Sequence record: MN871453.1 | Reading direction: 5' to 3' (one strand) | Length of the DNA: 64,000 bases | In this document: positions 2,556 through 31,806 of the stretch, piece by piece | Position numbering within the stretch: the stretch's first letter is position 1 | Layout: every line of letters starts with the position of its first letter | Notes under the pieces: generated by a model | What the model was told of the DNA's origin: nothing | The model's input: the letters and a program-made list of their open reading frames with translations, nothing else | The model's database searches: none | Position numbers and translations under genes: made by a program

Positions 2556-2563
2556 GTAATATA
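2556..2563 (-). promoter_or_regulatory. phage promoter core TATATTAC
   Basis: Same core as the recurring TATAT(T/C)AC motif, ~55 nt upstream of the GNAT gene. Confidence 0.5.
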
Positions 2564-11292: not shown

Positions 11293-12816
11293 TTAAAAAC
11301 GGCCGTTCCCGCCCCAACTGAAACCAGTCAACGCGTCATCGATACGGTTTTCTTCCATGGAGAATTGACTGTCTGCCAATTCGGTGATCGTACTTTGCAA
11401 GTCAGTGACGATCTTAGATGCCAGATCGTAGTCATCGGTTTTCTGCGGTGAGATAAGGCCATCGCAATACATCGGAATAACGTAAAGCTCTTCCGGTTGG
11501 CCGTCTAACGACAGATTGATTTTAATGTCCGTGATCGCAGAGCAGTCGATCGTACAGGTAACGATCATCTGACCATTATGAGAAATGGGATTCGCTACTT
11601 GATACTCAATCAACTGGCGAACCGCGTTCACCGCGCCCGAGACGTTCGAACCCGGAATCAACGGACGTTCACCCCAGACCTCAACCTGCATTTCTCCGAT
11701 ATCGTTATCATTACTGAAAGCGATCATGGCATCAGAGATGTGGTTGGTCATCAGGATAGAAGGTACGGCTTGAGAGATGATACGAACGGCTACCGCATCA
11801 ACACCTGCACCGCCGAGGTTGTTCCCACGTCCACGTTCGTAGCTTTTATAACCACGCTCTTCGACCTGTTTCGGATTGATAAACTGCGTGACGGGCTGAC
11901 CACGATAAGTCTCTGGCCAATCTACCATCCGCGCTAAGTCTTCGAGGCGAATGACGCCTTCTTGATAGAAGTCGCATTCTTGCAGGAACTGTGCAAAGAG
12001 TGGGTTATCTTCTGTTTTGCTCAGGTTAACTGCTCCTGCCGCCAGTTCCGATTTTGACATCTCTTCCCCTGCTAACGCAGAGTCGGGGTTCCAGCTCGGC
12101 TGCTCCATTGTCTCCGCCAGTACACCCGCCTTCAACACCGTCGAGATGTAGTCCGCCGCATTATTCTCACGACGAGAACCCATCTTGATATCGCCCACCA
12201 GATCAGCACGGGTATCAATAATCTGATCGCCGCCGGAATGGTAACGCTGATAATCCTGGATACCTACGTCATTGAAGATATCGTGCGGACGAATTAAACG
12301 CTCGCCACGGTCACGGCGAAGACCACGCTGGCCTTCGTTACGACCCCGACCACGGATAACGTACTCAGAGGATTCAATTCGTGGACGCAGAATACGGCCA
12401 CGGCCCGTATCGAGAACGGTGTCACGGATGATGATGGAGTTATTGATGAAGAGATCCATTTGGTCATCCAGTTCACCGCTGACCATACTGACGCCGTTAT
12501 AATCGGTGAACCCGGTCAGTACCTGACGTTGGGTAGATCCCGCATAGTCAGAGATCAGGAACGTGATAATGAAACTCAAACGTTTCTCACCCCAACCCCC
12601 GGGGATATCAATAATTGAACCGCGCTTTGCAGTCATGCTGATCGCATCGTTAACAGCTGCTGATAACGAAATCGAGTTGATGTTTCTGCCGCGATCGGTT
12701 GCTTTGACAAGACGGTCTTTCACGCCATTGTCGAAATGAGTCGTGAATGAGCTACCGTATTGGTCATCGTAATTAGAAGTAGTGAAGAAGAATGCACTAA
12801 TTACAGTCGGTTTCAT
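11293..12816 (-). CDS. picA: putative phage-nucleus protein import factor (PicA/Imp1, phiKZ gp69-like)
   Basis: 507 aa, immediately downstream of the gp68-like gene; assignment by synteny and size only. Confidence 0.55.
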   Translation of the reverse strand: MKPTVISAFFFTTSNYDDQYGSSFTTHFDNGVKDRLVKATDRGRNINSISLSAAVNDAISMTAKRGSIIDIPGGWGEKRLSFIITFLISDYAGSTQRQVLTGFTDYNGVSMVSGELDDQMDLFINNSIIIRDTVLDTGRGRILRPRIESSEYVIRGRGRNEGQRGLRRDRGERLIRPHDIFNDVGIQDYQRYHSGGDQIIDTRADLVGDIKMGSRRENNAADYISTVLKAGVLAETMEQPSWNPDSALAGEEMSKSELAAGAVNLSKTEDNPLFAQFLQECDFYQEGVIRLEDLARMVDWPETYRGQPVTQFINPKQVEERGYKSYERGRGNNLGGAGVDAVAVRIISQAVPSILMTNHISDAMIAFSNDNDIGEMQVEVWGERPLIPGSNVSGAVNAVRQLIEYQVANPISHNGQMIVTCTIDCSAITDIKINLSLDGQPEELYVIPMYCDGLISPQKTDDYDLASKIVTDLQSTITELADSQFSMEENRIDDALTGFSWGGNGRF

Positions 12817-12844: not shown

Positions 12845-14386
12845 TTAAGGTTTAGCAATGGTAGAACGCGTCTTAATGAAGATAATGAACTCAGCCAGTA
12901 ACTGTTTAAAGTTAGGCGGTACCATTAATCCGCGATGATTATCTTCAATCATCGTACTTTCGTTTGCAATCTCGGCAACGACGTCGCGTTGCCAATAGTT
13001 GTTCGCAAATTCATTATAGAAGGCGTTAACGGCGATTTCGCCAGGAGTTTTTAGCATGGCTTTAGAGCGGGCAGACCCTAAAGTTGAATAGCGTCGATAT
13101 GGATAAATTTCATTGAAGACATTCAGTTGCTCCTCTTTGATTTGTCCTGCATTGAAGATGTTTTGGATTCTTTCTTTCTGCGTGGCACCAATCAAGTCCG
13201 CCAACGCCGCGAACCCGTTTTGATAAAGATAGACCTGCGCAATAGAGATCAGATCAATCGCTCCGCTGCGCTCCGTATGCGGAATAGAACGCGTAACAAC
13301 CTGTTGATGTAACGTCACCGCTACCAACTTCAGTTGCGCTTCGTTCGGGTTGAAAAACTTCCTGGACTTATTACGCGCAATCACCGAGAAAAGTAACGCT
13401 TGGTCGTAGTCATCACCGAGAATACGACTGGCTTTCGCCCGCAGTTCTTTCGCCCAATAATCAAACGCGATACGTTCGCCGTCAGAAATACTTTCCCTGA
13501 CTTTATAACTTTCCGCCGTAGATAGGTTATCTTCTTCCCCGCCTGAGTCTTTGACCATGGTCTTTGGCCTGACGTCATCCTTGCCGCTCCGTCCGCCGTC
13601 ACTTGGAAGCTGCGTTTTGATCGCGCTCCACATCTTACTGATCAGGTTAACGGTTTCGACTTGATCATCGTCATCATCATGACTCAACTGAATCACTGAC
13701 AACCGACTCACCACGAGATACGCCAACATCCATTCGGGAATATCCGCTGAACCGATCCCAAAGATGATATTTTTCATCCCTGGTGTCGTCCCCGAAACCA
13801 CCGCATCTACGAACTCACGGAAACGTTCCATCGCCTGTGATTCATAGATTTCAGTTCGACGTAAAAGCTGTTGCGCGTAGATCTCTTTGTTGGATTCTGC
13901 CATTGCGGATTCCAACGCCAAGAACTCACTCCAGATCGGCACCATTGCTTTCAGAGCAATCGACATCACGGTCAGTTGACGATAATCCGGTTCCAGATAC
14001 GTTTGCTCTGGACGATCATCTTCCAGCAAAGACGTTTTCAAATCTGGTGGTAAACGGATATCGCTGTAGTGGCGCATCCAGTGATCGATCAAGGCTAACG
14101 GCAAGAACTGATAAAGTTCAATGATGTCCTCGTTGACCAATTTACTCGTGGTATTGAATTCGTACGCATTGTCAAGTTTATCACGAATGTTACGATAAAC
14201 TAAGAAGACCTTTTCCTGAATGTCTTCTTCGAGATAAGAGAAGAATCGATTAATGTCACGAAAGGTTGTTTCGTTCCAGGTCAATTTCTTCATCTCCCAA
14301 AAGAGCGTGTCGTATTCCCCGTGACTCATGCAGAGTACACGCGTTTTTGCTCGACCACCTAAACTTTCATCAAAATAAAATTGCAT
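12845..14386 (-). CDS. putative nvRNAP promoter-specificity subunit (phiKZ gp68-like)
   Basis: 513 aa, largely helical, between ChmC-like and PicA-like genes, own promoter motif at 14411; synteny and size only. Confidence 0.6.
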   Translation of the reverse strand: MQFYFDESLGGRAKTRVLCMSHGEYDTLFWEMKKLTWNETTFRDINRFFSYLEEDIQEKVFLVYRNIRDKLDNAYEFNTTSKLVNEDIIELYQFLPLALIDHWMRHYSDIRLPPDLKTSLLEDDRPEQTYLEPDYRQLTVMSIALKAMVPIWSEFLALESAMAESNKEIYAQQLLRRTEIYESQAMERFREFVDAVVSGTTPGMKNIIFGIGSADIPEWMLAYLVVSRLSVIQLSHDDDDDQVETVNLISKMWSAIKTQLPSDGGRSGKDDVRPKTMVKDSGGEEDNLSTAESYKVRESISDGERIAFDYWAKELRAKASRILGDDYDQALLFSVIARNKSRKFFNPNEAQLKLVAVTLHQQVVTRSIPHTERSGAIDLISIAQVYLYQNGFAALADLIGATQKERIQNIFNAGQIKEEQLNVFNEIYPYRRYSTLGSARSKAMLKTPGEIAVNAFYNEFANNYWQRDVVAEIANESTMIEDNHRGLMVPPNFKQLLAEFIIFIKTRSTIAKP

Positions 14387-14410: not shown

Positions 14411-14426
14411 TCAATAGAGTAATATA
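14411..14426 (-). promoter_or_regulatory. phage promoter TATATTACTCTATTGA
   Basis: Copy of the recurrent motif 25 nt upstream of the gp68-like start. Confidence 0.7.
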
Positions 14427-14480
14427 TGCACGAAAACAAATGGAACCGAGCGAGTCTCACGACTCGCTCGGGTATTCCTG

Positions 14481-18583: not shown

Positions 18584-19204
18584 TTACAGTTTCTCACCTA
18601 ACGGACTGAAGGGGTCAATGCCTTCATCAATCGCGTTATTGATCACGTCAAAGGTCGCACAAAGCTCCATCTGCTGTTCCAACGTCAGATGTTCTTCGCC
18701 CTCAACATCACAAGCGCCATAGGTGTATTCCACCCACCACTCCCCTTTACTGTTTTTCTCTGCGACTCCATTGCGAATCGCTTTCCAGTAAGGGTCGTTT
18801 TCCGGCGTAGTCTCAAACACAAAGGCGTCGCGTTTAGAACCCCAGCCGTGCGTACTCTGGCGATCCCAAAGTGAACGGGTTCTCGGACTACTGAGTAACC
18901 AACGTCGCATCTTCAGCGGTGCACTGGCCACTTCCTCAGGACTGTCCAAGAACTGAATGATGTTATCACGATAGAGACCGCGTTTACTGCTGTTCAAACG
19001 CTTGAGCTGACTTCTGACTGTGTCATCATAAAGCGATGAAATCATTGTCTTCGCCGAGTTAAGCATTCCTTTCGCCCGGTCAGACAGATTGGAACTAAAA
19101 CGCTCCAGTCTATCGTAAGAGCGCTGAATGTCCTCACGATCGGGAAGACCGAAGGCCGCTGCCCTAAAAACAGACTCACCGCCATCGATAATTGCAATTT
19201 TCAA
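18584..19204 (-). CDS. conserved hypothetical protein downstream of beta-prime N
   Basis: 206 aa, 4-nt overlap with RNAP gene. Confidence 0.65.
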   Translation of the reverse strand: MKIAIIDGGESVFRAAAFGLPDREDIQRSYDRLERFSSNLSDRAKGMLNSAKTMISSLYDDTVRSQLKRLNSSKRGLYRDNIIQFLDSPEEVASAPLKMRRWLLSSPRTRSLWDRQSTHGWGSKRDAFVFETTPENDPYWKAIRNGVAEKNSKGEWWVEYTYGACDVEGEEHLTLEQQMELCATFDVINNAIDEGIDPFSPLGEKL

Positions 19205-20738: not shown

Positions 20739-22640
20739 TTAACGACCGCCGAAACCGTAAGAAGAACGAGAACGAGAACGGAAACCTGCACCGTCGTAGC
20801 CGTTGGATTCGTAACGAGAAGTATAACCACGACGGCTGGTACGGCCATCCTGAGTAATACCATCAGCGGTAACTACCATGCCTGCTGCGGACAGTGCGCG
20901 GGTCAGGCCGAACAGCCAGTTGGCGTTCACTTCGATGACGTCTGCACGGTCGGTGATCTGATACTGACCGCCGGTGTAGTCTTCGATGATTTTTTCCATC
21001 TGGTCCATACGGACTTGCAGATCGATCGAATCGTCGTTCAGGCAACGATCGTAATCAGCAACCACCTGCGGAGATTTCAGACCGAAGTTGGTCAGAATTT
21101 CGTAGTAACCGATTTCACGCAGGTCACGTTTATGACCCTGTTCGTCGATCCAGGTGCCCAGCAGTTGCGGCATGTCGCGGATGATACCCACGTCGTACAG
21201 ATCTGAGGTGTTCATGATGGTAGAGAAACGATCGCCGGAGATGTTGTCGGCGGCTTCGATCAGCACGTCAACAGCTTCTTTACGGTTCGGGTTCGTTTCG
21301 TCGCACGCATCAACCAGCAGCTGCAGCAGCGGGGTGTTGATGGAAGAACGCGGGATCTGGATCTGAACGATCTGGCTGTTCTCACGAACAACGTTAGCAA
21401 CCAGGCCAGCCCATTCGTCGTCGTTCAGAACTTCCGGGAGTTTTTCAAACTCGCCTTTCAGTTCGTAGGTCAGAGCTTCAGCGGTACGCAGCGCGCCTTT
21501 GGTGTTCAGCGGACGCAGACCCTGAATCAGAGCCGGTTCAGTCATCAGTGCAGATACCTGTGCCAGAGAGAACATCAGGTATTCAGGAATCGCCACGCAT
21601 TTCAGATCGCTGATCACCAGAGCGATACCGTAGATACGGGTATCGAAGTCTTCCGCTTTCTTTTTGCGCAGTGCAAAGAAACTGTTGGACTGCTCTTCTT
21701 CGCCTTTGTAATACAGGTCGACGTGGGAGATCAGACCGGCCAGCTGAGTGGACTCACGCTCGGACAATACGTTAACAATACCGCCACGACGTTCGTCACG
21801 CGGCGCCACCATCAGGTCAACAACGATATCGGCGCGATGCGGCATTTCGGTGATGTCGTCAGCAACGTCACCTTGATGGAACGCGATGTTCGCCAGCAGA
21901 TCGTTATTTTTCAGGTCCAGCGCCGCAATGCTGAACTCGTTAGTGGTCAGGATCGCGTTAACGGAATAGATGATCTGGTTGATCACCGCAGAAGCGATAC
22001 GCTCCAGTTCTGCGTCGGTCGGTTTGTCCAGGAAGATCGGGGACGCCGCCAGATGCTGAACCTGGCCGGTGAATGCCGGGTTGGACAGGGCAATCAGATC
22101 GTCCAGGGACTCTTTATAGCCGATCGCTTCGTACTGGTCGTTAGCGGTGGTGGTGAAACGCACGGTGTGGTCACGACCAACCTGCACGGCCTGTTTCGGC
22201 ATCACGGTGTTACCCACGAAGATCACGGTAGACGCGAAGATCATGCCGTTGTCTTTCAGACGGGCAGCGATGACCGCAGCATCCAGTTTCATTTGGGTAT
22301 CTTTGCCTGTTGCCGGCGTTACCGTCCATTCCAGGACACCGTTCAGGCTGATCGCGGCGCTGTGCTGTTTCTGGATTTCTTTGGTCAGTTCGACGAATTT
22401 GGCTACGTCGCCTGCCGCAGAGTTCAGGGACAGTACTGGCGCATCTTTACGGAAGTTATAGGATGAAGTCACTTTTTTCTCCTGACGGGAATCATTTTCG
22501 TTGGAACGGGTGTAAAAGGAACGGCGGCGTGCAGAGGATTCTTCCTGGCGACCTTCGTCGCGAGAAGTTTCCTGCGCACCAGTTTCTACTGCTGCTTCTT
22601 CTGCTTTGTTTTTGTTGTGATCGTCATCACGTAAGGCCAT
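20739..22640 (-). CDS. chmA: chimallin, major phage nuclear shell protein (phiKZ gp54-like)
   Basis: 633 aa, immediately upstream of beta-prime N, disordered N- and C-terminal arms, strong highly-expressed codon bias, dedicated promoter; size and synteny match chimallin. Confidence 0.8.
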   Translation of the reverse strand: MALRDDDHNKNKAEEAAVETGAQETSRDEGRQEESSARRRSFYTRSNENDSRQEKKVTSSYNFRKDAPVLSLNSAAGDVAKFVELTKEIQKQHSAAISLNGVLEWTVTPATGKDTQMKLDAAVIAARLKDNGMIFASTVIFVGNTVMPKQAVQVGRDHTVRFTTTANDQYEAIGYKESLDDLIALSNPAFTGQVQHLAASPIFLDKPTDAELERIASAVINQIIYSVNAILTTNEFSIAALDLKNNDLLANIAFHQGDVADDITEMPHRADIVVDLMVAPRDERRGGIVNVLSERESTQLAGLISHVDLYYKGEEEQSNSFFALRKKKAEDFDTRIYGIALVISDLKCVAIPEYLMFSLAQVSALMTEPALIQGLRPLNTKGALRTAEALTYELKGEFEKLPEVLNDDEWAGLVANVVRENSQIVQIQIPRSSINTPLLQLLVDACDETNPNRKEAVDVLIEAADNISGDRFSTIMNTSDLYDVGIIRDMPQLLGTWIDEQGHKRDLREIGYYEILTNFGLKSPQVVADYDRCLNDDSIDLQVRMDQMEKIIEDYTGGQYQITDRADVIEVNANWLFGLTRALSAAGMVVTADGITQDGRTSRRGYTSRYESNGYDGAGFRSRSRSSYGFGGR

Positions 22641-22924: not shown

Positions 22925-24019
22925 ATGATCTCAGCTTTCGAATTTCTAAACCGTCAATCCGTGAAGACGTTTTTTCCGGGACAACTCACCTTGCTGCGCA
23001 ACAATGCCGACATTAATTTAAAGAACATTAAACAACATTACCGTAATAGCATCCGTGCTGTTGAGAGTGATCATATACTGATTCAGATACTTCAACATTT
23101 ACCGTCGCGGGTAGACATGAACGATGAACAGTATTATCGATTCTGTCACTCCGCCAGTAAACTGACACACAGGGCGTTGAACCTCAATACGGAAACCGTG
23201 CTTTCTGGTAAAGCCAGTAAACCATGGTTTTACGGTCAAGGTATGACTGAGTTCTACATCGTTGAAGAAAAAGATCTCCCTTATCGATTCGACGCAAAGA
23301 ACTACTGGCAAGAACTTATTCCAGTACGCCCAATTTCGCACAATCTGACAGGGCTTTCTTTTAACGCCCGTGACGGGCAGCACTTTAGTCACTATAAAGG
23401 AAACGCTTTCCTGTCTATCGACATCGGTCTTCTGGCAGTCCAGTATCGGCACTGGTCGCAGTTTAACGTTGGTACAGAAGCGAACCCGCATCCCGTTTCT
23501 ATCAACCAATTTGTTTATCAGTACCCTTTAGTCAACATGATCGAAGAGGACATGAATTTTTGTTTCTTCAATCGTCTTCGGTTGTCGACAGGGTATATCC
23601 CGGTTAACGATGACGCCGCGCGACACGGGTTGGCAATCTACGATTTACGTCCACTGGTTGATAAAGTCTGGGAGCAGTGGTTACAACGCGCCAGAAGCGC
23701 CCCACGGCGCTTCATTGACCTTCCGGCACAAATCCCCGGGTTATTTACAGAAACACTCCTTGAAGCGATTACGATCCCGGATATCTTTTTCAACCGTCAG
23801 AACCTCGGTCTTTACACACTGGCAAATTTACCGTACTTAAGTACCCTGTCCCGTCTTTCTGGCGAAACAGGGTCTAAAGACAACGGCAGTGTAAAAACTC
23901 AACTGGAACGTTGGTACGCGCGTTTTGTTAACGGAGGTTACCTGACACCGATAACGGGGATTAATCCTCAAGATACTCTACAGGTTCTGTTGGACGAAGT
24001 GCTGATTCCACTTCGTTAA
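22925..24019 (+). CDS. putative virion structural protein (phiKZ gp52-like)
   Basis: 364 aa on the late strand between chimallin and DNA polymerase; 59-bp convergent overlap with pol. Confidence 0.55.
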   Translation: MISAFEFLNRQSVKTFFPGQLTLLRNNADINLKNIKQHYRNSIRAVESDHILIQILQHLPSRVDMNDEQYYRFCHSASKLTHRALNLNTETVLSGKASKPWFYGQGMTEFYIVEEKDLPYRFDAKNYWQELIPVRPISHNLTGLSFNARDGQHFSHYKGNAFLSIDIGLLAVQYRHWSQFNVGTEANPHPVSINQFVYQYPLVNMIEEDMNFCFFNRLRLSTGYIPVNDDAARHGLAIYDLRPLVDKVWEQWLQRARSAPRRFIDLPAQIPGLFTETLLEAITIPDIFFNRQNLGLYTLANLPYLSTLSRLSGETGSKDNGSVKTQLERWYARFVNGGYLTPITGINPQDTLQVLLDEVLIPLR

Positions 24020-26177
24020 AGTCAGAGAAAGCATCCTCACGAGAAATTTGATCAAAGACCAGTTTAGATTGGTCTTTATCAAAGAGGTAGTATTCCAGTG
24101 ACTCAAGAACCAAGTAGAAAGGTGACATGGCACTGCCGATAATTTTACGAATGTTTGTCGCCTCAAGGATATCCTCTGGAATCCCGATTGACATGACAAT
24201 ACTTTCTGGCAGCAGGATACGACCCAAATAAGTCTTATTCTTCGCTGCCAGGAATTGTCGCATTCGTTTCGCCATTTCCTGATCTTTCCAGTTCGCTAAC
24301 CATTTCTCCGTTTTGGTTTTCGTATCGTGAATAATGCTGAACGACAACGCAGAGTATGGCGGTGGTTCAATAAGACCAAACTTCGGCGCAAAGACTTCTT
24401 GCCAGAGTTCGTAGTTCAGATACGGCGTATTCTGTTCTTCGGTCTTCTTAGTGTACCCTTCCTCTTCTTTAACACGTGCGGCTTTAAGGTACGTGGTCTC
24501 CCCTTTACGAATCGATTCGTAGATCGTATATTCCCACCGGGCTACCCACCGTAAGTAACGACTCAGTTCCAACATTTTCCCTTCCGTAACACTGTCGACA
24601 ATCTCTTCGATCATCAAATCAAGATCTTTACGTACTCCGGCCGGTGAGTTGGAAGCAATGAGCTCTACGCCTTTCTTCTCTCGGTCTTCGATATAGACCC
24701 CTTCTTGTACGCGTTTGTTTGCCGCATAGTGCTTAGCACGGCTGGTCAACATGAACACCGGGAAAAGGAATTCGTTCTTCATTGCCAGACGGAAGACTTC
24801 TTTCTCGTCCTGAACGCCCATGTTTACGGTCATGGTAGCAAGGTTATGCGTGGTCGTCTGCGAGACAAGGAACGCAATCCCTTCAGCCAGAATGATATTT
24901 TCTTTCGTTAGCAAATCATTATCAGAGTACCAACGAATCCAATCCTGAACCGTAAAGATAGCGGAGTCGGTATCAGACCCTACACCACTACGTCTAACTG
25001 CGTGAGGGAAGTCAGAAATCAGGAACGGGATGTTTCTTGACATCAGGAACGTATCAATGATTTCTTTATATTTGTCCAGCGTCTGGTAAATGAGCGCACA
25101 GGTGGAACCTAAACGCCAGTAATCGGGTTTAGCAATAACTTCTTCGTGGAATGGGTTTTTATCGCCAATGATTTCCGGGAACATAACCGTGATCTGTGCG
25201 ATGGTGTCTTCATCGACAAACTTCATCCATCCTTCGTAGTCAGGTACCGGCGTTTCTGCTGGGGTGACTAAACCATGAATCAGATCCCTTACAATCGCCT
25301 CGTTGAATTGACGAATATGATAAAGGTCGCCCATGTAAACGAACGCTGCTCGTTCGTAATCGCTACAGCCTTTCAGGAAACGTTTTAAATTGCGGTCTCC
25401 CCCTTCTGATCGCCAGTAGAGGTCAGACGAATACGACAGTACCGCTAACGTTTCTTCAACCGACGGGATATGCAAATTAAACTTCTTAACGGTATTTTCT
25501 ACTTTTGCCCAATCGGTCAGTTCAAGGATACTGGTCAGGTTAGCGTAGACAACGTCAGGTCGCCAGTAGTGACGAGAGCCAGACAATAAACGGTCATTGT
25601 TGGAGTTGGCAATACCGTTGGCTATACGACAGCAACTTGTCAATACCGGGTGCGTTGAGCGGTCGTAAAGCGGTGAGTGCTCAGAACGGTGGTTACCAGA
25701 GATGGCGTTGTTCAGAATCTTTTTGTTGTTCTGATTGTTGTTGTGGAAGGTTGCCTTAATAAAGTTACCGACTTTCTTCGCTTCAAACATTTCATGTTTT
25801 TCGGCGGAGCGCTTTTTCAAGTTACCTTTGATATATTCAGAGAGTAACGATAACTTTTGGTGCGGCGGTAACACGGTCGTGAACGTAGGTGCCATTAACC
25901 ATTCGTTATCGAGAATGTCTTTGAGGTACTGTGAGAAAGGTACCATAATCGGTTTTTGATCCAGATTCTCATCGCGTTCCAACATGCAAAAAACAGGATC
26001 GGTCACGCCGTTATCCGGGTTTTTCAGTTCCTCGACAACAAAGTCACGACATTCTTCGAAAGGTCTTCCAGTGCTGCGTTGTATGAATAAAGCAGTTTGA
26101 ATAATGTACGACTCGTGCACGCCAAGGTCTCGATGGTAATCCTTAGCGGTGCGCGTAAACGGGTTAGAAACTTTCAC
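23961..26177 (-). CDS. family B DNA polymerase, palm/thumb part of split enzyme (phiKZ gp50-like)
   Basis: Motif B KKILNNAISG, motif C GSDTDSAIF, KHY and KKGVEL; no exonuclease motifs seen. Confidence 0.88.
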   Translation of the reverse strand: MKVSNPFTRTAKDYHRDLGVHESYIIQTALFIQRSTGRPFEECRDFVVEELKNPDNGVTDPVFCMLERDENLDQKPIMVPFSQYLKDILDNEWLMAPTFTTVLPPHQKLSLLSEYIKGNLKKRSAEKHEMFEAKKVGNFIKATFHNNNQNNKKILNNAISGNHRSEHSPLYDRSTHPVLTSCCRIANGIANSNNDRLLSGSRHYWRPDVVYANLTSILELTDWAKVENTVKKFNLHIPSVEETLAVLSYSSDLYWRSEGGDRNLKRFLKGCSDYERAAFVYMGDLYHIRQFNEAIVRDLIHGLVTPAETPVPDYEGWMKFVDEDTIAQITVMFPEIIGDKNPFHEEVIAKPDYWRLGSTCALIYQTLDKYKEIIDTFLMSRNIPFLISDFPHAVRRSGVGSDTDSAIFTVQDWIRWYSDNDLLTKENIILAEGIAFLVSQTTTHNLATMTVNMGVQDEKEVFRLAMKNEFLFPVFMLTSRAKHYAANKRVQEGVYIEDREKKGVELIASNSPAGVRKDLDLMIEEIVDSVTEGKMLELSRYLRWVARWEYTIYESIRKGETTYLKAARVKEEEGYTKKTEEQNTPYLNYELWQEVFAPKFGLIEPPPYSALSFSIIHDTKTKTEKWLANWKDQEMAKRMRQFLAAKNKTYLGRILLPESIVMSIGIPEDILEATNIRKIIGSAMSPFYLVLESLEYYLFDKDQSKLVFDQISREDAFSDFNEVESALRPTEPVEYLED

Positions 26178-26225: not shown

Positions 26226-26285
26226 AAAAAAGAAAAAAAAAAGAAAAGATAACCTTCTCCTGTAACCTTTCGGTTACAGGAGAAG
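26226..26285 (-). terminator. terminator closing the small-gene array operon
   Basis: 14-bp stem CTTCTCCTGTAACC/GGTTACAGGAGAAG, GAAA loop on -, long U-tract. Confidence 0.8.
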
Positions 26286-26292
26286 AGAATAG

Positions 26293-26715
26293 TTAACTGG
26301 TGACGATGGTGAAATTGTTGAAGCCTGCGCTGTTAATCGCCAGCCGGATCTTTTCAATATCGCCTGTACCAATCCCGGGAATAGTGACAAGGGCATTCAC
26401 TGTCTCAACAACGTTGATAGTATCAACTTTGATCCAGGGTAATCCGATGACGCGTTCTGTGCCGTCTTCTAAGGTCAATACCAACCAGTTGTAAGAACGG
26501 GCATTGTCTTCAACGCTACCCGATGGCAGAAGAGGATAAACCTTCGCGTGCTCTGCTTCCGGGTCAATACCGAATTTAGCAGCACCTCTGGCCGACACGA
26601 CGTCAGTCGGAACCGCGTTACGGAAAACATCCCCGTAAAGCGCCGACGGATAAACCTGAAAGGTCACCGTGGAGTTCAGTGTAAATTTACCGAGGATGAG
26701 GTCTGAAGACGCCAT
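26293..26715 (-). CDS. conserved hypothetical protein upstream of DNA polymerase
   Basis: 140 aa, beta-rich, abuts upstream gene. Confidence 0.65.
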   Translation of the reverse strand: MASSDLILGKFTLNSTVTFQVYPSALYGDVFRNAVPTDVVSARGAAKFGIDPEAEHAKVYPLLPSGSVEDNARSYNWLVLTLEDGTERVIGLPWIKVDTINVVETVNALVTIPGIGTGDIEKIRLAINSAGFNNFTIVTS

Positions 26716-27075
26716 TTAATTTTCTCCCGATTCGAAAAGCAACATTAACGTAGTAGAGTCGAAGTACTCGAGGTCTACATAACGAAAGGTTGTTTTACTG
26801 GTGATTTCTTCCACTCGTTCTTTCAAGGTTTCGTGGGTGAGAAAAAGATGACCAGCAATCTCACCGTGTTCAATAGAAGGAGCAGTAGTTTTCAATCCGC
26901 TGTCAATGACTTCCAATACGAGCTTCCTGGTCGAGTCCTTTAGGTATTCGATGTCAATAACCGTATCATCATCTTCATCGCATTGGACTTCGTCTAAAAG
27001 ACCCTGATAAAAATAACTAAAGATTAAAGGGAGTCGTACAAGGGAAGTAAGAACTTTTATTTTCATGTTCTTCAA
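26716..27075 (-). CDS. array protein 10 (putative paralogue family)
   Basis: 119 aa; C-terminal RYVDLEYFDSTTLMLLF. Confidence 0.6.
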   Translation of the reverse strand: MKNMKIKVLTSLVRLPLIFSYFYQGLLDEVQCDEDDDTVIDIEYLKDSTRKLVLEVIDSGLKTTAPSIEHGEIAGHLFLTHETLKERVEEITSKTTFRYVDLEYFDSTTLMLLFESGEN

Positions 27076-27445
27076 TCCTTAAACCAAGAGAATAACTTCC
27101 CGTGTACAGGAATAAGTTCTCAAGATGATAACGTTTCTCTAATAGGAAGGGATGGACTTTCTCCATCTCACGGTAAAGTCGAGTATGGAGACAATCGTAG
27201 TTTTCCAGAATGATTTCCATGCCGTACTCGAGTAAACCAGGATCACTCGCAATAAAGAATCCTTTTAAGACCTCGGGGTGCATCGCCATTTTTTCCGGTT
27301 CCAAAATATCTTCGACAAAAAGCGACGAAAGATCACGTGCTTTTATCCAGACATCTCTTGGCATATTATCTAGGAGCGTCGATAAACCGGAATAAAAAGA
27401 CTGGCAGGGTAAAACAACCAACGTTGCATTTTTGTTTTTCACCAT
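27017..27445 (-). CDS. array protein 9
   Basis: 142 aa; RYHLENLFLYTGSYSLGLRI. Confidence 0.6.
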   Translation of the reverse strand: MVKNKNATLVVLPCQSFYSGLSTLLDNMPRDVWIKARDLSSLFVEDILEPEKMAMHPEVLKGFFIASDPGLLEYGMEIILENYDCLHTRLYREMEKVHPFLLEKRYHLENLFLYTGSYSLGLRIEEHENKSSYFPCTTPFNL

Positions 27446-27903
27446 ACCTCCCGACTAAGGTCCTCCACTACAAATGAGATTGCGTTGTTTCGTAAGAGTA
27501 CGTCGCCGATATCGATATCTTCGTGATATCGGAGTTGACTCCTCTCGAAGGACAACAGTAAATCGGTCGCAATCACTTCAGCCATATCTTCAATGTAACA
27601 AAGCAATCGGTGTCGAGTACCCCTATCTAACCGTAACTGATCGCTGGGATCATCTGCATCAGGGACAAAGAAAAGATCAATCGTGTCATCGAGTCTTTCC
27701 GATGCCTCCTGCTGACCGAAGTGCTTAACGTCCAATACATAAGCGATGGTACAGCCGATAAAGTCAGTCACTTCAAAACGAATCTTGTCTCGGGGGATAT
27801 AACGATTAAACCCATCGATATATCGACTGAAGAAAAGGTGGAAGTTTGACGTTGGCCAATCCTTCACCGTAAAGATTAAGATAGTACGAAAGAAACGGGA
27901 CAT
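27439..27903 (-). CDS. array protein 8
   Basis: 154 aa; IDIGDVLLRNNAISFVV. Confidence 0.6.
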   Translation of the reverse strand: MSRFFRTILIFTVKDWPTSNFHLFFSRYIDGFNRYIPRDKIRFEVTDFIGCTIAYVLDVKHFGQQEASERLDDTIDLFFVPDADDPSDQLRLDRGTRHRLLCYIEDMAEVIATDLLLSFERSQLRYHEDIDIGDVLLRNNAISFVVEDLSREVW

Positions 27904-28313
27904 TAAGATCCTCTGCGAACAGTCAATTGGAAGGCGATGCCGTGGTGGCGTAATTCTACAAAATCAATACGGGGGGAACGTGAAAAGTTACTTCGTATCT
28001 CCCGTCGATAATCACGATAAAACGAGACGAAGAGTTCTTCCGCTGTTTCTATCAACTCTTCCGTTGTAACATCCGGCATCTTAGCGTGCGGATACGAACG
28101 TAAGAAATTCTCGATTTCAACTCTGATACGCCGCGTACCTGATGACGATAGATTTTCTTCGTCGGTGCCGATAATGAAGTCGAATATCATTTGCAGAACA
28201 AGTCGGCGATAGAGTAAATCGCAATACATCAGTTCGTGCAGTATGGCAGCGGTTTCTCTTCGATAAGGCAAAACAAAAAGACGGGTCGTAGTTTCAGTCA
28301 CTGACGGTAACAT
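27903..28313 (-). CDS. array protein 7
   Basis: 136 aa; RIDFVELRHHGIAFQL. Confidence 0.6.
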   Translation of the reverse strand: MLPSVTETTTRLFVLPYRRETAAILHELMYCDLLYRRLVLQMIFDFIIGTDEENLSSSGTRRIRVEIENFLRSYPHAKMPDVTTEELIETAEELFVSFYRDYRREIRSNFSRSPRIDFVELRHHGIAFQLTVRRGS

Positions 28314-28761
28314 AGAGGTCTCCTCTAACGAATCTTACGTTTCTGATTTGATCAGGACTCAAAACGATATCTTTCATGGCTAAAGTCTTCCTTGATATCT
28401 TCGAGCCTAATAATTGAATATCGATGTAGAAATTTCGCTTGAATTCTTCTTTGAGCTTCTCGTCCAGATGTTCCATTCCGTCGGAGCACAATAAGTTATC
28501 TAAGACCTTTTCCGCTTCTTCGTTAGCCTTGAAAAAGAAGGGCATGAAGAAGGTTCTTTGGTAACGTGATAAAGAAAATAGAAAAGCCGGGAGAATAATC
28601 TCCCGGCTGTGTATTGAGTATAGGTTTTCTATTTTCTTTATTTCTGACGCGTCCCAATGCAGGTCATAGATGAAGGTTTGTGAATAATCTAATCGACCGT
28701 TGGTCACGTGAGATCTCCCATCCATAATAGTCAATGATACGTTCTTCGCTTGTTTTCTCAA
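28294..28761 (-). CDS. array protein 6 (likely GTG start at 28707)
   Basis: QIRNVRFVRGDLYVTV; SD GGGAG before GTG. Confidence 0.55.
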   Translation of the reverse strand: MRKQAKNVSLTIMDGRSHVTNGRLDYSQTFIYDLHWDASEIKKIENLYSIHSREIILPAFLFSLSRYQRTFFMPFFFKANEEAEKVLDNLLCSDGMEHLDEKLKEEFKRNFYIDIQLLGSKISRKTLAMKDIVLSPDQIRNVRFVRGDLYVTVSD

Positions 28762-29038
28762 GAAACGTTTTGATTTCTTGTAGCGACAATTCCAGAAGTG
28801 CGTCAGTATCAGATAAATTTAGTTCAGGCGTAGAAAAAAAGGAAAGAAGTCGTTGCTCCATCGTAGAGTAACCATAAATCAGTTTCTCCAGACTAAAGAG
28901 CAAAAGTAAACCATACGCCTCGCCAAACGTCACCGGCTCTAAAGTGTCAGAGAAAAAGCAACGGTAGATCTTCTCGAGGCGAGGTCGTAATAACGCGATG
29001 TCAATAATCTCTATTTTGTTCTTCAGATTGTTCTTCAC
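28664..29038 (-). CDS. array protein 5 (GTG start inferred at 29038)
   Basis: EIIDIALL...RIIDYYGWEISRDQRSIRLF. Confidence 0.55.
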   Translation of the reverse strand: MKNNLKNKIEIIDIALLRPRLEKIYRCFFSDTLEPVTFGEAYGLLLLFSLEKLIYGYSTMEQRLLSFFSTPELNLSDTDALLELSLQEIKTFLEKTSEERIIDYYGWEISRDQRSIRLFTNLHL

Positions 29039-29540
29039 GTTTTTCTCGTTGTATCCTTTCCCAATCCCGAATTCGCCAATCGCCAAGGTTCTCGACAATC
29101 AATGCGTTGTTTCTGACTTCGACCACCACAATTTCATCCCAGAACCTATTTTTTCGTATCCCCATGTCACGAAAATACTCTACCGCGAACACGATAAAGA
29201 TATCGATGACTTCGCGGTAGAGTTCTTGGGACGGCTCATCCACGATCTCTTCGTTGTACGGATTAAAACCAATAGGCTCTAACGTGTAACCTTTAAACCA
29301 ACCACGAATAGCAGCATCGTCGTCCCAGCATTCCCAAGGATATTTAGCGTCTTTATTGATGGCATTCCAAAAGAGACGGAGGGCGGTTTCCTTAAGATCT
29401 TCTACACGAAGGTTCTTGTCAGCGTACCGGTCGATAACACCGTGTTGGCGACGGACTGAATAGAGAATGGACGATAGTCGTCTGGCGAGATAATCAATAT
29501 CAATAACATAACGCATAATAGAGACCTTATCGATAAACAA
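29001..29540 (-). CDS. array protein 4 (likely start 29516, MRYVIDIDYL)
   Basis: EIVVVEVRNNALIVEN. Confidence 0.6.
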   Translation of the reverse strand: MFIDKVSIMRYVIDIDYLARRLSSILYSVRRQHGVIDRYADKNLRVEDLKETALRLFWNAINKDAKYPWECWDDDAAIRGWFKGYTLEPIGFNPYNEEIVDEPSQELYREVIDIFIVFAVEYFRDMGIRKNRFWDEIVVVEVRNNALIVENLGDWRIRDWERIQREKREEQSEEQNRDY

Positions 29541-29931
29541 GATAGGTACGTGAGTTCATCCGTTCCGTGTAGCATTCACCGTAAATACCGTATCGATCCC
29601 ATTGAGAACGAAGATCGCTAAGGATTTTTTCTAATACGCCTGTATTTTTCATTTTTTCAATTTCTTCCTGAAGAGACATGTAAAACGATAACTGGTCCCG
29701 ATAATAAGGATCATCGGGAATCGTTTCAAAATCGCTTTCCAGCGGGTCAATGTTGTTCGAGTAATAAATCTCAATGAACAGTTTGTTATAATCTTTAGCT
29801 TTTCCTTTTTCCCAGTGGTACGCGGTAGAAAGGAAAGCGTCTATAATCTGATCCCGCCAGAGACCCTTATAGCCATCGGTGAAGACCTTAAGCGCCGGGG
29901 GGATTTCGAAGAGATATTTTTGCACTGCCAT
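29527..29931 (-). CDS. array protein 3
   Basis: 134 aa; YGECYTERMNSRTYLVYR. Confidence 0.55.
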   Translation of the reverse strand: MAVQKYLFEIPPALKVFTDGYKGLWRDQIIDAFLSTAYHWEKGKAKDYNKLFIEIYYSNNIDPLESDFETIPDDPYYRDQLSFYMSLQEEIEKMKNTGVLEKILSDLRSQWDRYGIYGECYTERMNSRTYLVYR

Positions 29932-30245
29932 AAATCAGGATTCCTCTGACGAAACTCTTCATCATCTACCCAAACCATTAATGCGTTCCGTTGTATATCG
30001 AGCGATTCGATATGAAGCAGATTAACCGGAAGTTTCAATGGTACGCCACCGTACTCCTTTTCCAATACCCTGGCTACTTGCCATATCTTTTCTGTCTCCC
30101 AACGGTCATTATCAGTAATTAAATAATCAGGCGGAATCGTGTTATACGTCCGGTCTAACCAGTGGGCTAAAATCCTTAACCGATAGAACCGATCCATTGT
30201 CGGTGTCATATCGAGAAAATGCTTAATATCGATGACAATCAACAT
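29841..30245 (-). CDS. array protein 2 (start inferred at 30245, MLIVIDIKHFL)
   Basis: LHIESLDIQRNALMVWV. Confidence 0.6.
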   Translation of the reverse strand: MLIVIDIKHFLDMTPTMDRFYRLRILAHWLDRTYNTIPPDYLITDNDRWETEKIWQVARVLEKEYGGVPLKLPVNLLHIESLDIQRNALMVWVDDEEFRQRNPDLWQCKNISSKSPRRLRSSPMAIRVSGGIRL

Positions 30246-30672
30246 GGTCTTCAGTTCCCAGTGTAATTTCAAAATGATTGTGTTGGAAAGAAAAGTCGAG
30301 GACACGATAATGACGCGGGATACCCTCCAATTGAAAGAGCGTAGTGAGTTCCTTTTCTTTTTCATTAACTCGATTGAAGATCGCTTCGATCATTGCGTTA
30401 AAATCACGTTTATCTCTACCCGGTAGCATTTTGCTGGGTTCTACCTTATCGGTTAACAAATAGATCCCTTGCGCCCAATGCTTTCTTTCCCGGAAATGAA
30501 ACCACGTCATCCAGGTCGCGTAGAAAATTTCTTTCACAGTGAAAATACCGTGATAAGGTGAATTAATCCAGTAAAAGATCTTTGGGATCTCGCCTTTAAC
30601 TATCATGACGTCACCAGACTTCCTGTAAGTCATTCTAAGCCTCTTTTTACTGTCAGTAGTACTATCTATCAA
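30223..30672 (-). CDS. array protein 1
   Basis: RVLDFSFQHNHFEITL; first gene after promoter 30712. Confidence 0.55.
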   Translation of the reverse strand: MIDSTTDSKKRLRMTYRKSGDVMIVKGEIPKIFYWINSPYHGIFTVKEIFYATWMTWFHFRERKHWAQGIYLLTDKVEPSKMLPGRDKRDFNAMIEAIFNRVNEKEKELTTLFQLEGIPRHYRVLDFSFQHNHFEITLGTEDHVDCHRY

Positions 30673-30711: not shown

Positions 30712-30727
30712 TCAATAGGGTAATATA
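30712..30727 (-). promoter_or_regulatory. phage promoter TATATTACCCTATTGA driving the array
   Basis: Copy of recurrent motif, downstream of the PhuZ terminator. Confidence 0.7.
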
Positions 30728-30755
30728 TGTCCTATTTCTTTTCCAACAAAACAAA

Positions 30756-30790
30756 ATAAAAAAGACGGAGCGGGAAAACCCCGCTCCGTT
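30756..30790 (-). terminator. terminator after phuZ
   Basis: ACGGAGCGGG/CCCGCTCCGT stem plus U-tract on -. Confidence 0.75.
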
Positions 30791-30837: not shown

Positions 30838-31806
30838 CTAGAGTTCCATCCCGTCGCCCTGAACATCGCCACGGATAAAGTTTTGTGCAGCCTTGGACTT
30901 CTTATCGCGTGCAGCGCGACGTTGTTCGTAATCGTCAAACGTTTGGCGAAGTTCCATTAAGATCTCATTCAGCCCATCTGTATGAATGACAAAATAAAGT
31001 GAATCTTCCCCTGTACGTTTACGGGTGCCGAACGTGTTATAGTCCGCTGGGATAGTACCGGCTACCGGCTTGTTGTCGCCGTAGAGTTCCGCAACTGAAA
31101 TAGGTGCGTTAACGCTCACCGCGTCATCACGGTCCTGGAAGACGTCAAGGAGACCGAGTTCCGGACTTACGCCTGCACCAAGAACGGGTTTCGCCCAGGT
31201 CAGTACGTCCGCAGAATCCAGTCCGTGATGTTTCCCGGAATAAAGATCCAGAACGGCGCGGATGGTAGCGATCATGATCGCATCGACTTCGGCGTTGCGC
31301 AGGTTGTTCTCATTGCTCTCGTAACAGACGTTACAGAACTGATTGTTCTTGATCGCAATGTTACGCAGCGACGAAATGGTCTTCATGGTGTTTTCGGTAG
31401 TATTACCCGATTCTGTCGAACCGACTAAAAAGACCAGCACCGCTTTATTCTGCGCATAAAGCGCTTCGATCAGTTTCGGACCAATGACCGAACCGCTGCC
31501 GCCGGAGGCGGAGAAAATCAGAATGTTGAGATCTGACGGCTTCAACTTAAAGAGAATGTCGCTGATGCTTCGGTTCGTGACGTCGTAGTTGGTTTTACGG
31601 ATTTTCCCTGCGCCGTCTACGCCCTCGAGGAAATACCATTTGTCAGGGTCTTGAACAGACCGCTCGGAAACGTTGGAACGGCTACCGTCAACATACGCTT
31701 CTTTGACGTTAGCGAGCTCAGAAAGATCAGTACGCATGAGTTTAGTGAGGATGTCGATACCCGCACCACCTGCGCCGTAAATAGTTACTGTGTTATTCGA
31801 TGACAT
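30838..31806 (-). CDS. phuZ: PhuZ phage tubulin
   Basis: IYGAGGAG, DGAGK, tubulin signature SASGGSGS, C-terminal GDGMEL similar to PhuZ tail; 322 aa. Confidence 0.93.
   Translation of the reverse strand: MSSNNTVTIYGAGGAGIDILTKLMRTDLSELANVKEAYVDGSRSNVSERSVQDPDKWYFLEGVDGAGKIRKTNYDVTNRSISDILFKLKPSDLNILIFSASGGSGSVIGPKLIEALYAQNKAVLVFLVGSTESGNTTENTMKTISSLRNIAIKNNQFCNVCYESNENNLRNAEVDAIMIATIRAVLDLYSGKHHGLDSADVLTWAKPVLGAGVSPELGLLDVFQDRDDAVSVNAPISVAELYGDNKPVAGTIPADYNTFGTRKRTGEDSLYFVIHTDGLNEILMELRQTFDDYEQRRAARDKKSKAAQNFIRGDVQGDGMEL

Follow-up and report, generated by a model that had tools for sequence, protein, structure and literature searches.

The question raised by the locus between phuZ and the DNA polymerase gene in a 64,000-nucleotide (nt) stretch of sequence record MN871453.1 (the window) is whether the small genes that fill it are copies of one another, and what a phage might do with such a set. 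An earlier note on this DNA had described ten co-directional open reading frames (ORFs) here, which are indeed present (g1 to g10; 26716–30672; this and all further positions in the array are on the minus strand), and had proposed that they represent one fold, amplified and diversified. The region is 100% identical to the Klebsiella jumbo phages KpSz_1 and KpZh_LPS_45, and 98.7% identical to the RefSeq phage KpLz-2_45 (genus Siatvirus). On the minus strand of the window the order is phuZ (30838–31806), the ten small genes, an eleventh small gene (g11), the DNA polymerase gene (23961–26177), a reverse gene and the chimallin gene (ChmA; 20739–22640), and the phage is therefore nucleus-forming, a Klebsiella chimallivirus of the genus Siatvirus. 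Among the factors that decide which proteins enter the phage nucleus, only Imp2, Imp4 and Imp5 are known to be cargo-specific, and these three are regarded as private to Pseudomonas phages. The reading that we favour, and to which we give an even chance of being correct, is that the array is an operon of diverged paralogues supplying cargo-specific import adaptors.

The structural evidence comes from AlphaFold models of g4 (29001–29516; 171 amino acids, aa), made from a 53-sequence alignment, and g9 (27017–27445; 142 aa), made from 12 sequences after a word search. The g4 model, the reference for the fold, has a predicted local distance difference test score (pLDDT) of 93.4 and consists of a strand at residues 2–6, helices at 7–24, 26–31, 38–54, 66–71 and 94–118, strands at 127–135 and 138–146, and a last helix at 147–170. 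The g9 model (pLDDT 84.3) has a strand at 7–13, helices at 15–26, 36–48, 57–61, 69–97 and 99–102, and strands at 106–114 and 119–126. Both share the same element order, with an N-terminal strand, helices and a C-terminal β-hairpin. This is the architecture that had been read for all ten proteins from a list of N- and C-terminal motifs. The motifs exist, and those of g4 coincide with the N-terminal strand (residues 2–6) and the C-terminal hairpin (127–146) of its model; the architecture as such is borne out, by element order and common library entries, for g4 and g9, two of the ten.

When the models were compared with the BFVD library using Foldseek, the g4 model returned its orthologues on top, followed by a tail of small chimallivirus proteins, and the g9 model gave at least 50 matches at an expect value (E) of 0.04 or lower, nearly all of them small chimallivirus proteins. 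Four matches of the g9 model are also matches of the g4 model (A0A7D7IUY2, A0A8A6C8W0, A0A7R7EFI8 and A0A481W487; probability 0.57–0.85), and the E-values of the g9 model against g4-family entries are 0.01–0.04. Weak PDB matches of both models fall on identical chain ranges (5fc2_B 1830–1949, 6gx7_G and 7nb6_A), and at the sequence level the g4 profile matched no PDB entry. Judged by their models, g4 and g9 read as one chimallivirus-specific α/β fold without a solved relative.

Further support is provided by relatives of the window phage. In phage PhiEaH1 the block between PhuZ and the polymerase comprises nine genes, encoding 104, 151, 163, 123, 138, 142, 132, 127 and 151 aa. The g4 model matches a PhiEaH1 protein of 163 aa, and the g9 model matches PhiEaH1 proteins of 132, 123 and 142 aa; assigned by organism and exact length and not by accession, these four are almost certainly block genes. 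Counted from the homologue of phiKZ gp43, the 163-, 123-, 142- and 132-aa genes correspond to g4, g5, g8 and g9, and the best PhiEaH1 match of the g9 model (E 7.7e-5) is the 132-aa gene at g9's own position. The positions of these equivalents suggest that g5 (28664–29038; about 124 aa, with an inferred GTG start) and g8 (27439–27903; 154 aa) share the fold of g4 and g9.

Among environmental relatives, a triplet of gene families (f10, f7 and f16) lies directly upstream of core gene cg1, the counterpart of g11, in 21 IMG/VR contigs, with a mutual HHsearch probability of 98%. A g4-family profile reaches f16 (HHsearch 83%), and further tandem copies, among them two duplicates side by side, are picked up by a merged superfamily profile. 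In the wider family, tandem amplification of the fold within the block is therefore real, with a copy number of one to four among lineages. The triplet resembles g8 to g10 in position and protein size, and paralogy is demonstrated within it; it differs in that its profiles miss the window genes, to which it is linked by position and, for g9, by the fold family. Recent tandem duplication is seen on one environmental chimallivirus contig, where a pair of neighbouring 135-aa genes from a single family (L039, 5561–5968 and 5978–6385) lies immediately upstream of the cg1 homologue.

Several observations weigh against a single family of import adaptors. Pairwise BLASTP among g1 to g10 gave nothing below E 0.5, and the g4-family hidden Markov model (HMM) gave no significant score against the other nine proteins in 3000 shuffles (g3 reached a p of about 0.01, non-significant once corrected). 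No link among g1 to g10 (best pair probability <5%), and none from g1 to g10 to phiKZ gp44–gp48, hence none to Imp2 or Imp4, emerged when each gene profile was run by HHsearch against a set of 241 family profiles from 94 loci; the merged tandem-paralogue profile does not reach the window genes. On the structural side, the AlphaFold models cover two of the ten genes, the likeness of g4 and g9 draws on shared library matches and element order and not on superposition, and genes of PhiEaH1 and of phage SL2 were tied to BFVD entries by nothing more than organism and exact length. By sequence, moreover, Imp2 and Imp4 have been reported as confined to Pseudomonas phages, and fast evolution suits anti-host functions equally well. 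A deeper g9 profile brought no gain (HHsearch of g9 against g4, about 1%), and Pfam and PHROGs gave nothing usable for any of the ten proteins. Most of the gene profiles are shallow, and even positional orthologues from Moabitevirus score poorly; the sequence-level tests of paralogy therefore have limited power. The proposal of one amplified and diversified fold thus gains from the g4 and g9 models and from tandem paralogy in other chimalliviruses, and finds no echo in the profiles of g1 to g10. Of the two outcomes that the earlier note had taken as telling against it, the lack of profile–profile similarity was found for the window genes, and unrelated structures were not found for g4 and g9.

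The motifs extend the comparison to genes outside the modelled pair. The 11-mer of the g4 hairpin has a shuffle p of 0.007 in g2 (29841–30245; 134 aa), which also carries the N-terminal strand motif, of 0.025 in g8 and of 0.047 in g7 (27903–28313; 136 aa), at the same position near the C-terminus in each. Taken as sequence alone, the motifs rise only weakly above chance, and the hairpin motif suggests that g2, g7 and g8 may share the g4/g9 fold. Were the likeness of g4 and g9 a modelling artefact or a small α/β arrangement of a common kind, with the motifs arising by chance, this would agree with Foldseek E-values no better than those given above, with the HHsearch value of g9 against g4, and with BLAST-level motif matches at the frequency expected by chance. 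Both models are confident, however, their match lists consist almost wholly of small chimallivirus proteins although the library covers all viruses, and the link from the g4 family to the tandem paralogues is an independent one between profiles. We therefore consider it very improbable that no real relationship exists. A Chou-Fasman-style secondary-structure profile was dropped, its three-state accuracy (Q3) being merely 0.50–0.63 when calibrated on the g4 and g9 models. ESM Atlas matches of g7 were rejected as heterogeneous and low in shared-feature counts; for g8, ESM Atlas gave no usable match and a word search of 5.8 billion proteins returned its own cluster only.

Two genes anchor the array to the corresponding block of phiKZ. 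The first is g4, which belongs to the gp43 family: iterated HMM searches from g4 or from gp43 recover the identical 76 loci (HHsearch 99.9%, E 4e-32), and g4 has the position of this family, between PhuZ and the gp49 homologue. With its members (among them PhiPA3 gp039 and a 325-aa Goslar protein) g4 shares the block position and a conserved post-hairpin motif, G-D-aromatic-R-I-x-D-W; it differs in length, as gp43 has 357 aa and the 171 aa of g4 cover the N-terminal part only. No published function of gp43 was found in the literature searched. The second anchor is g11 (26293–26715; 140 aa), the last gene of the operon and immediately upstream of the DNA polymerase gene, which is the homologue of phiKZ gp49 or core gene cg1 (HHsearch 100%; 86 loci), entered in Table S3 of PMC10299810. 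The g11 product has an SH3-type fold, stands outside the fold family of g4, and is described as a DNA polymerase interactor. Between the anchors lie six genes in the window (g5 to g10) and six in phiKZ (gp44, 44.1, 45, 46, 47 and 48). The earlier note had correctly placed the equivalent phiKZ block between PhuZ (gp39) and the polymerase (gp50); its description of that block as mostly uncharacterised is outdated, as gp47, gp48 and gp49 have published roles.

The order PhuZ, small genes, cg1, polymerase, reverse gene and ChmA is kept in eight phage genera and 80 IMG/VR contigs, in a sample that comprised Moabitevirus, Iapetusvirus, PCH45, Agricanvirus, Proteus phage 10, KpGz_1 and phiKZ-like phages besides the contigs. 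A 157-aa block gene of Serratia phage PCH45 (L006, 13542–14015) is annotated as 3-ketoacyl-CoA thiolase; neither the size nor the context of the gene makes this plausible, and it is probably an annotation error. The block also has an unannotated gap (Ea277G, L005, 12465–12839; PhiEaH1, L095, 3667–4047) with an exactly fitting 124-aa ORF, probably a missed gene at the g7 position. In Agricanvirus-like phages (L008, 10230–11738; L009, 10275–11564) a long gene of 429–502 aa directly follows phuZ; it is matched by the g4 and g9 models and missed by the g4 HMM, and may carry a g4-like domain.

The roles published for the phiKZ block bear directly on the function of the array. In phiKZ, orf47 (imp2) and orf48 (imp4) are needed for the nuclear import of specific cargo, Nlp1 and TopA (bioRxiv 10.1101/2024.03.27.586873). 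Imp2 itself enters the phage nucleus through Imp1, and neither imp2 nor imp4 tolerates transposon insertions. In the window, g9 lies two genes upstream of the gp49 homologue, as Imp2 does, and g10 (26716–27066; 116 aa) occupies the position of Imp4. The two pairs are alike in lying directly upstream of the gp49/cg1 homologue and the polymerase, with sizes of 178 and 127 aa for Imp2 and Imp4 against 142 and 116 aa for g9 and g10. They are unlike in that neither sequence nor profile similarity of Imp2 and Imp4 to the window genes was found. A tblastn search with gp47 returned Pseudomonas phages only, and HHsearch with the g9 profile and with its deeper version gave no match to the gp47 family.

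At the level of structure, the matches of the g9 model include an SL2 phage protein of 178 aa (E 9e-3, probability 0.94, template modelling (TM) score 0.47), which by length and organism is a candidate for SL2_312; this Imp2 orthologue of phage SL2 has 178 aa and is 98.9% identical to phiKZ gp47. PhiPA3 protein 044, stated to be an Imp2 homologue, appears in the list of the g4 model as a weak match (E 0.2). On the strength of its model, g9 is probably related to Imp2. The link of g10 to Imp4 is one of position, with no detectable similarity to gp48. Elsewhere in the window, homologues of phiKZ Imp3 (gp59; 18584–19204, minus strand; 23% identity, E 2e-14) and of Imp1/PicA (gp69; 11293–12816, minus strand; 25% identity, E 2e-28) are present, and the core import machinery is therefore encoded in the same window.

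These observations can be combined into a mechanism under the favoured reading. The terminator after phuZ, a TATATTAC promoter, g1 to g10, the SH3 gene g11 and a second terminator make up one early-type operon, which is the form taken in Siatvirus by a block (PhuZ, small genes, cg1, polymerase, ChmA) that stays in place across the Chimalliviridae. At least g4 and g9 would be ancient paralogues that have diverged past recognition by sequence, in a fold family that would also take in phiKZ gp43, by its N-terminal domain, and probably Imp2 (gp47); most of the ten genes, we infer, are copies of this one scaffold that have diverged. Each paralogue would keep the scaffold and vary its surface, recognising a different cargo or host partner, and recognised cargo would be licensed for import into the phage nucleus via PicA/Imp1, as for phiKZ Imp2 and Imp4. 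The suggestion, already made in the earlier note, that the proteins are adaptors for cargo selection fits the published phiKZ genetics, and it is by analogy with these that g1 to g10 may act in import. Eukaryotic importin/karyopherin cargo receptors offer a parallel, by analogy only, in that a repertoire of related receptors selects cargo for a DNA compartment; they differ in fold and size, and chimalliviruses are without a nuclear-pore-like channel and target proteins by surface patches, not linear signals.

A wider generalisation is that every nucleus-forming phage carries, at this fixed locus, a tandem and fast-diversifying cargo-receptor family that includes Imp2, Imp4, the gp43 N-terminal domain and g1 to g10, is recognisable by structure only, and sets through its repertoire which phage and host proteins are admitted; we put this forward tentatively and think it somewhat unlikely to hold in full. 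The block and the Imp factors are already published. In the literature searched, which was not exhaustive, we came across no claim that the genes of the block belong to a single structural family, and none that extends Imp2-like proteins beyond Pseudomonas phages. If there is one structural family that includes Imp2, a candidate set of adaptors would be found at a predictable place in every chimallivirus, the rapid divergence of these adaptors would explain why targeting rules differ from phage to phage, and ten named genes of a Klebsiella phage would be directly testable. The locus would also serve as a worked example of paralogy that is missed by profile methods and recovered by structure prediction.

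The rate at which these genes evolve was assessed by comparison with phage FBKp24 (genus Maaswegvirus), which has orthologues of all ten at 49–70% amino-acid identity, against 90% for g11 and 88% for the polymerase. By gene, the identity is 51% for g1 (30223–30633; 136 aa, an ORFan), 56% for g2, 62% for g3 (29527–29931; 134 aa, an ORFan), 49% for g5, 49% for g6 (28294–28707; 137 aa), 51% for g7, 50% for g8 and 50% for g10; the N-terminal part of g6 is likewise conserved. The proportion of nonsynonymous differences (pN) is 0.20–0.36 and that of synonymous differences (pS) about 0.8, with synonymous sites saturated, so that the pN/pS of about 0.24–0.45 indicates purifying selection on fast-changing proteins. 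Given orthologues at this identity and these ratios, g1 to g10 are real genes. The nonsynonymous divergence (dN) of g3, g5, g6, g7, g8 and g10 is 3–6 times that of the polymerase. By sequence, g1, g2 and g9 can be followed as far as Moabitevirus, and g9 also into PCH45-like phages, while g3, g5, g6, g7, g8 and g10 are found in Siatvirus and Maaswegvirus only. The g2 gene is unannotated in RefSeq NC_061418 (L001, 6717–7009), yet it is conserved in FBKp24, Moabitevirus and 2050HW/Kodama and is under purifying selection.

Such narrow ranges and high rates would also be expected if the fold were limited to g4, g9 and possibly two or three others, and the rest were unrelated lineage-specific ORFans that had gathered in a permissive early operon and served varied roles in host takeover or anti-defence. 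The uniformly negative sequence and profile comparisons among the ten agree with this, and the interval is not homogeneous in phiKZ, where gp40 belongs to a phosphatase family; the differing, SH3-type fold of g11 points the same way. It is less easily reconciled with the conserved number and order of the genes that separate the gp43 and gp49 homologues, with the fact that the fold is matched by four PhiEaH1 block genes out of nine, with the proven tandem paralogues of other lineages, and with the recurrence of the hairpin motif in g2, g7 and g8 at one C-terminal position. We regard a block of such mixed origin as a real possibility, though not a probable one.

Start codons in the array were refined using ribosome-binding context and orthologue alignments, which gave proteins of 116–171 aa; the 120–180 aa given previously had been derived from the longest ORFs. 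Eight of the ten junctions overlap, in operon order by 23, 91, 38, 44, 20, 1, 7 and 50 nt, and g10 abuts g11, in line with the earlier description of mostly overlapping or abutting ORFs; g3 and g4 are separated by a gap of 10 nt. The array is a translationally coupled, early-type operon. Paralogous subunits frequently form hetero-oligomers, and the coupled paralogues could be subunits of one complex, for instance a replication-factory or shell-associated scaffold with the SH3 protein and the polymerase. The overlapping start and stop codons would suit such an assembly, as would an operon shared with the homologue of gp49, a polymerase interactor, and followed by the polymerase as the next gene. 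The phenotypes of phiKZ Imp2 and Imp4 are, however, separate and cargo-specific and not one shared phenotype, and a copy number that ranges from one to four among lineages would be unusual in a fixed complex. A heteromeric assembly thus appears rather improbable to us.

The cargo-adaptor reading also touches on how the array is expressed. A single promoter had been placed at 30712, and a phiKZ-type promoter, a 19-nt motif with TATATTAC, was found at 30712–30730, about 80 nt upstream of the ATG of g1; TATATTAC is the published core of phiKZ promoters (PMC7058600). The 19-mer has one further near-copy in the window (14411–14429, minus strand; chance expectation, none), which precedes an operon with a gp68 homologue (12845–14386) and the PicA/Imp1 homologue, and the small-gene block and the importer operon therefore carry one promoter type. 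From the recurrence of the motif, co-regulation of block and importer is suggested. A looser TATATTAC-type copy at 2556–2563 (minus strand), upstream of a gene at 2019–2501, was included in the promoter alignment.

Upstream of this promoter, a hairpin terminator with an 11-bp stem (8 GC pairs) and a T run (30765–30789) follows phuZ and closes the preceding unit. The one terminator claimed for the array exists, as a hairpin with a 15-bp stem and a T-rich tail (26253–26286) after g11 and before the DNA polymerase gene, but the account was incomplete, as a conserved third hairpin lies inside the g6 coding sequence. This terminator-like RNA hairpin (28585–28608; -20.4 kcal/mol, z -7.3) is followed by a T run, and its stem is identical in FBKp24 despite the saturated synonymous sites; the authors of the FBKp24 annotation placed a terminator at this position. 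Downstream of g5, this hairpin may divide the operon or attenuate it. The same FBKp24 annotation (L002, 5713–8000) misses the orthologues of g2 and g10, and shortens those of g5 and g6 to ORFs of 91 and 83 aa that flank the annotated terminator.

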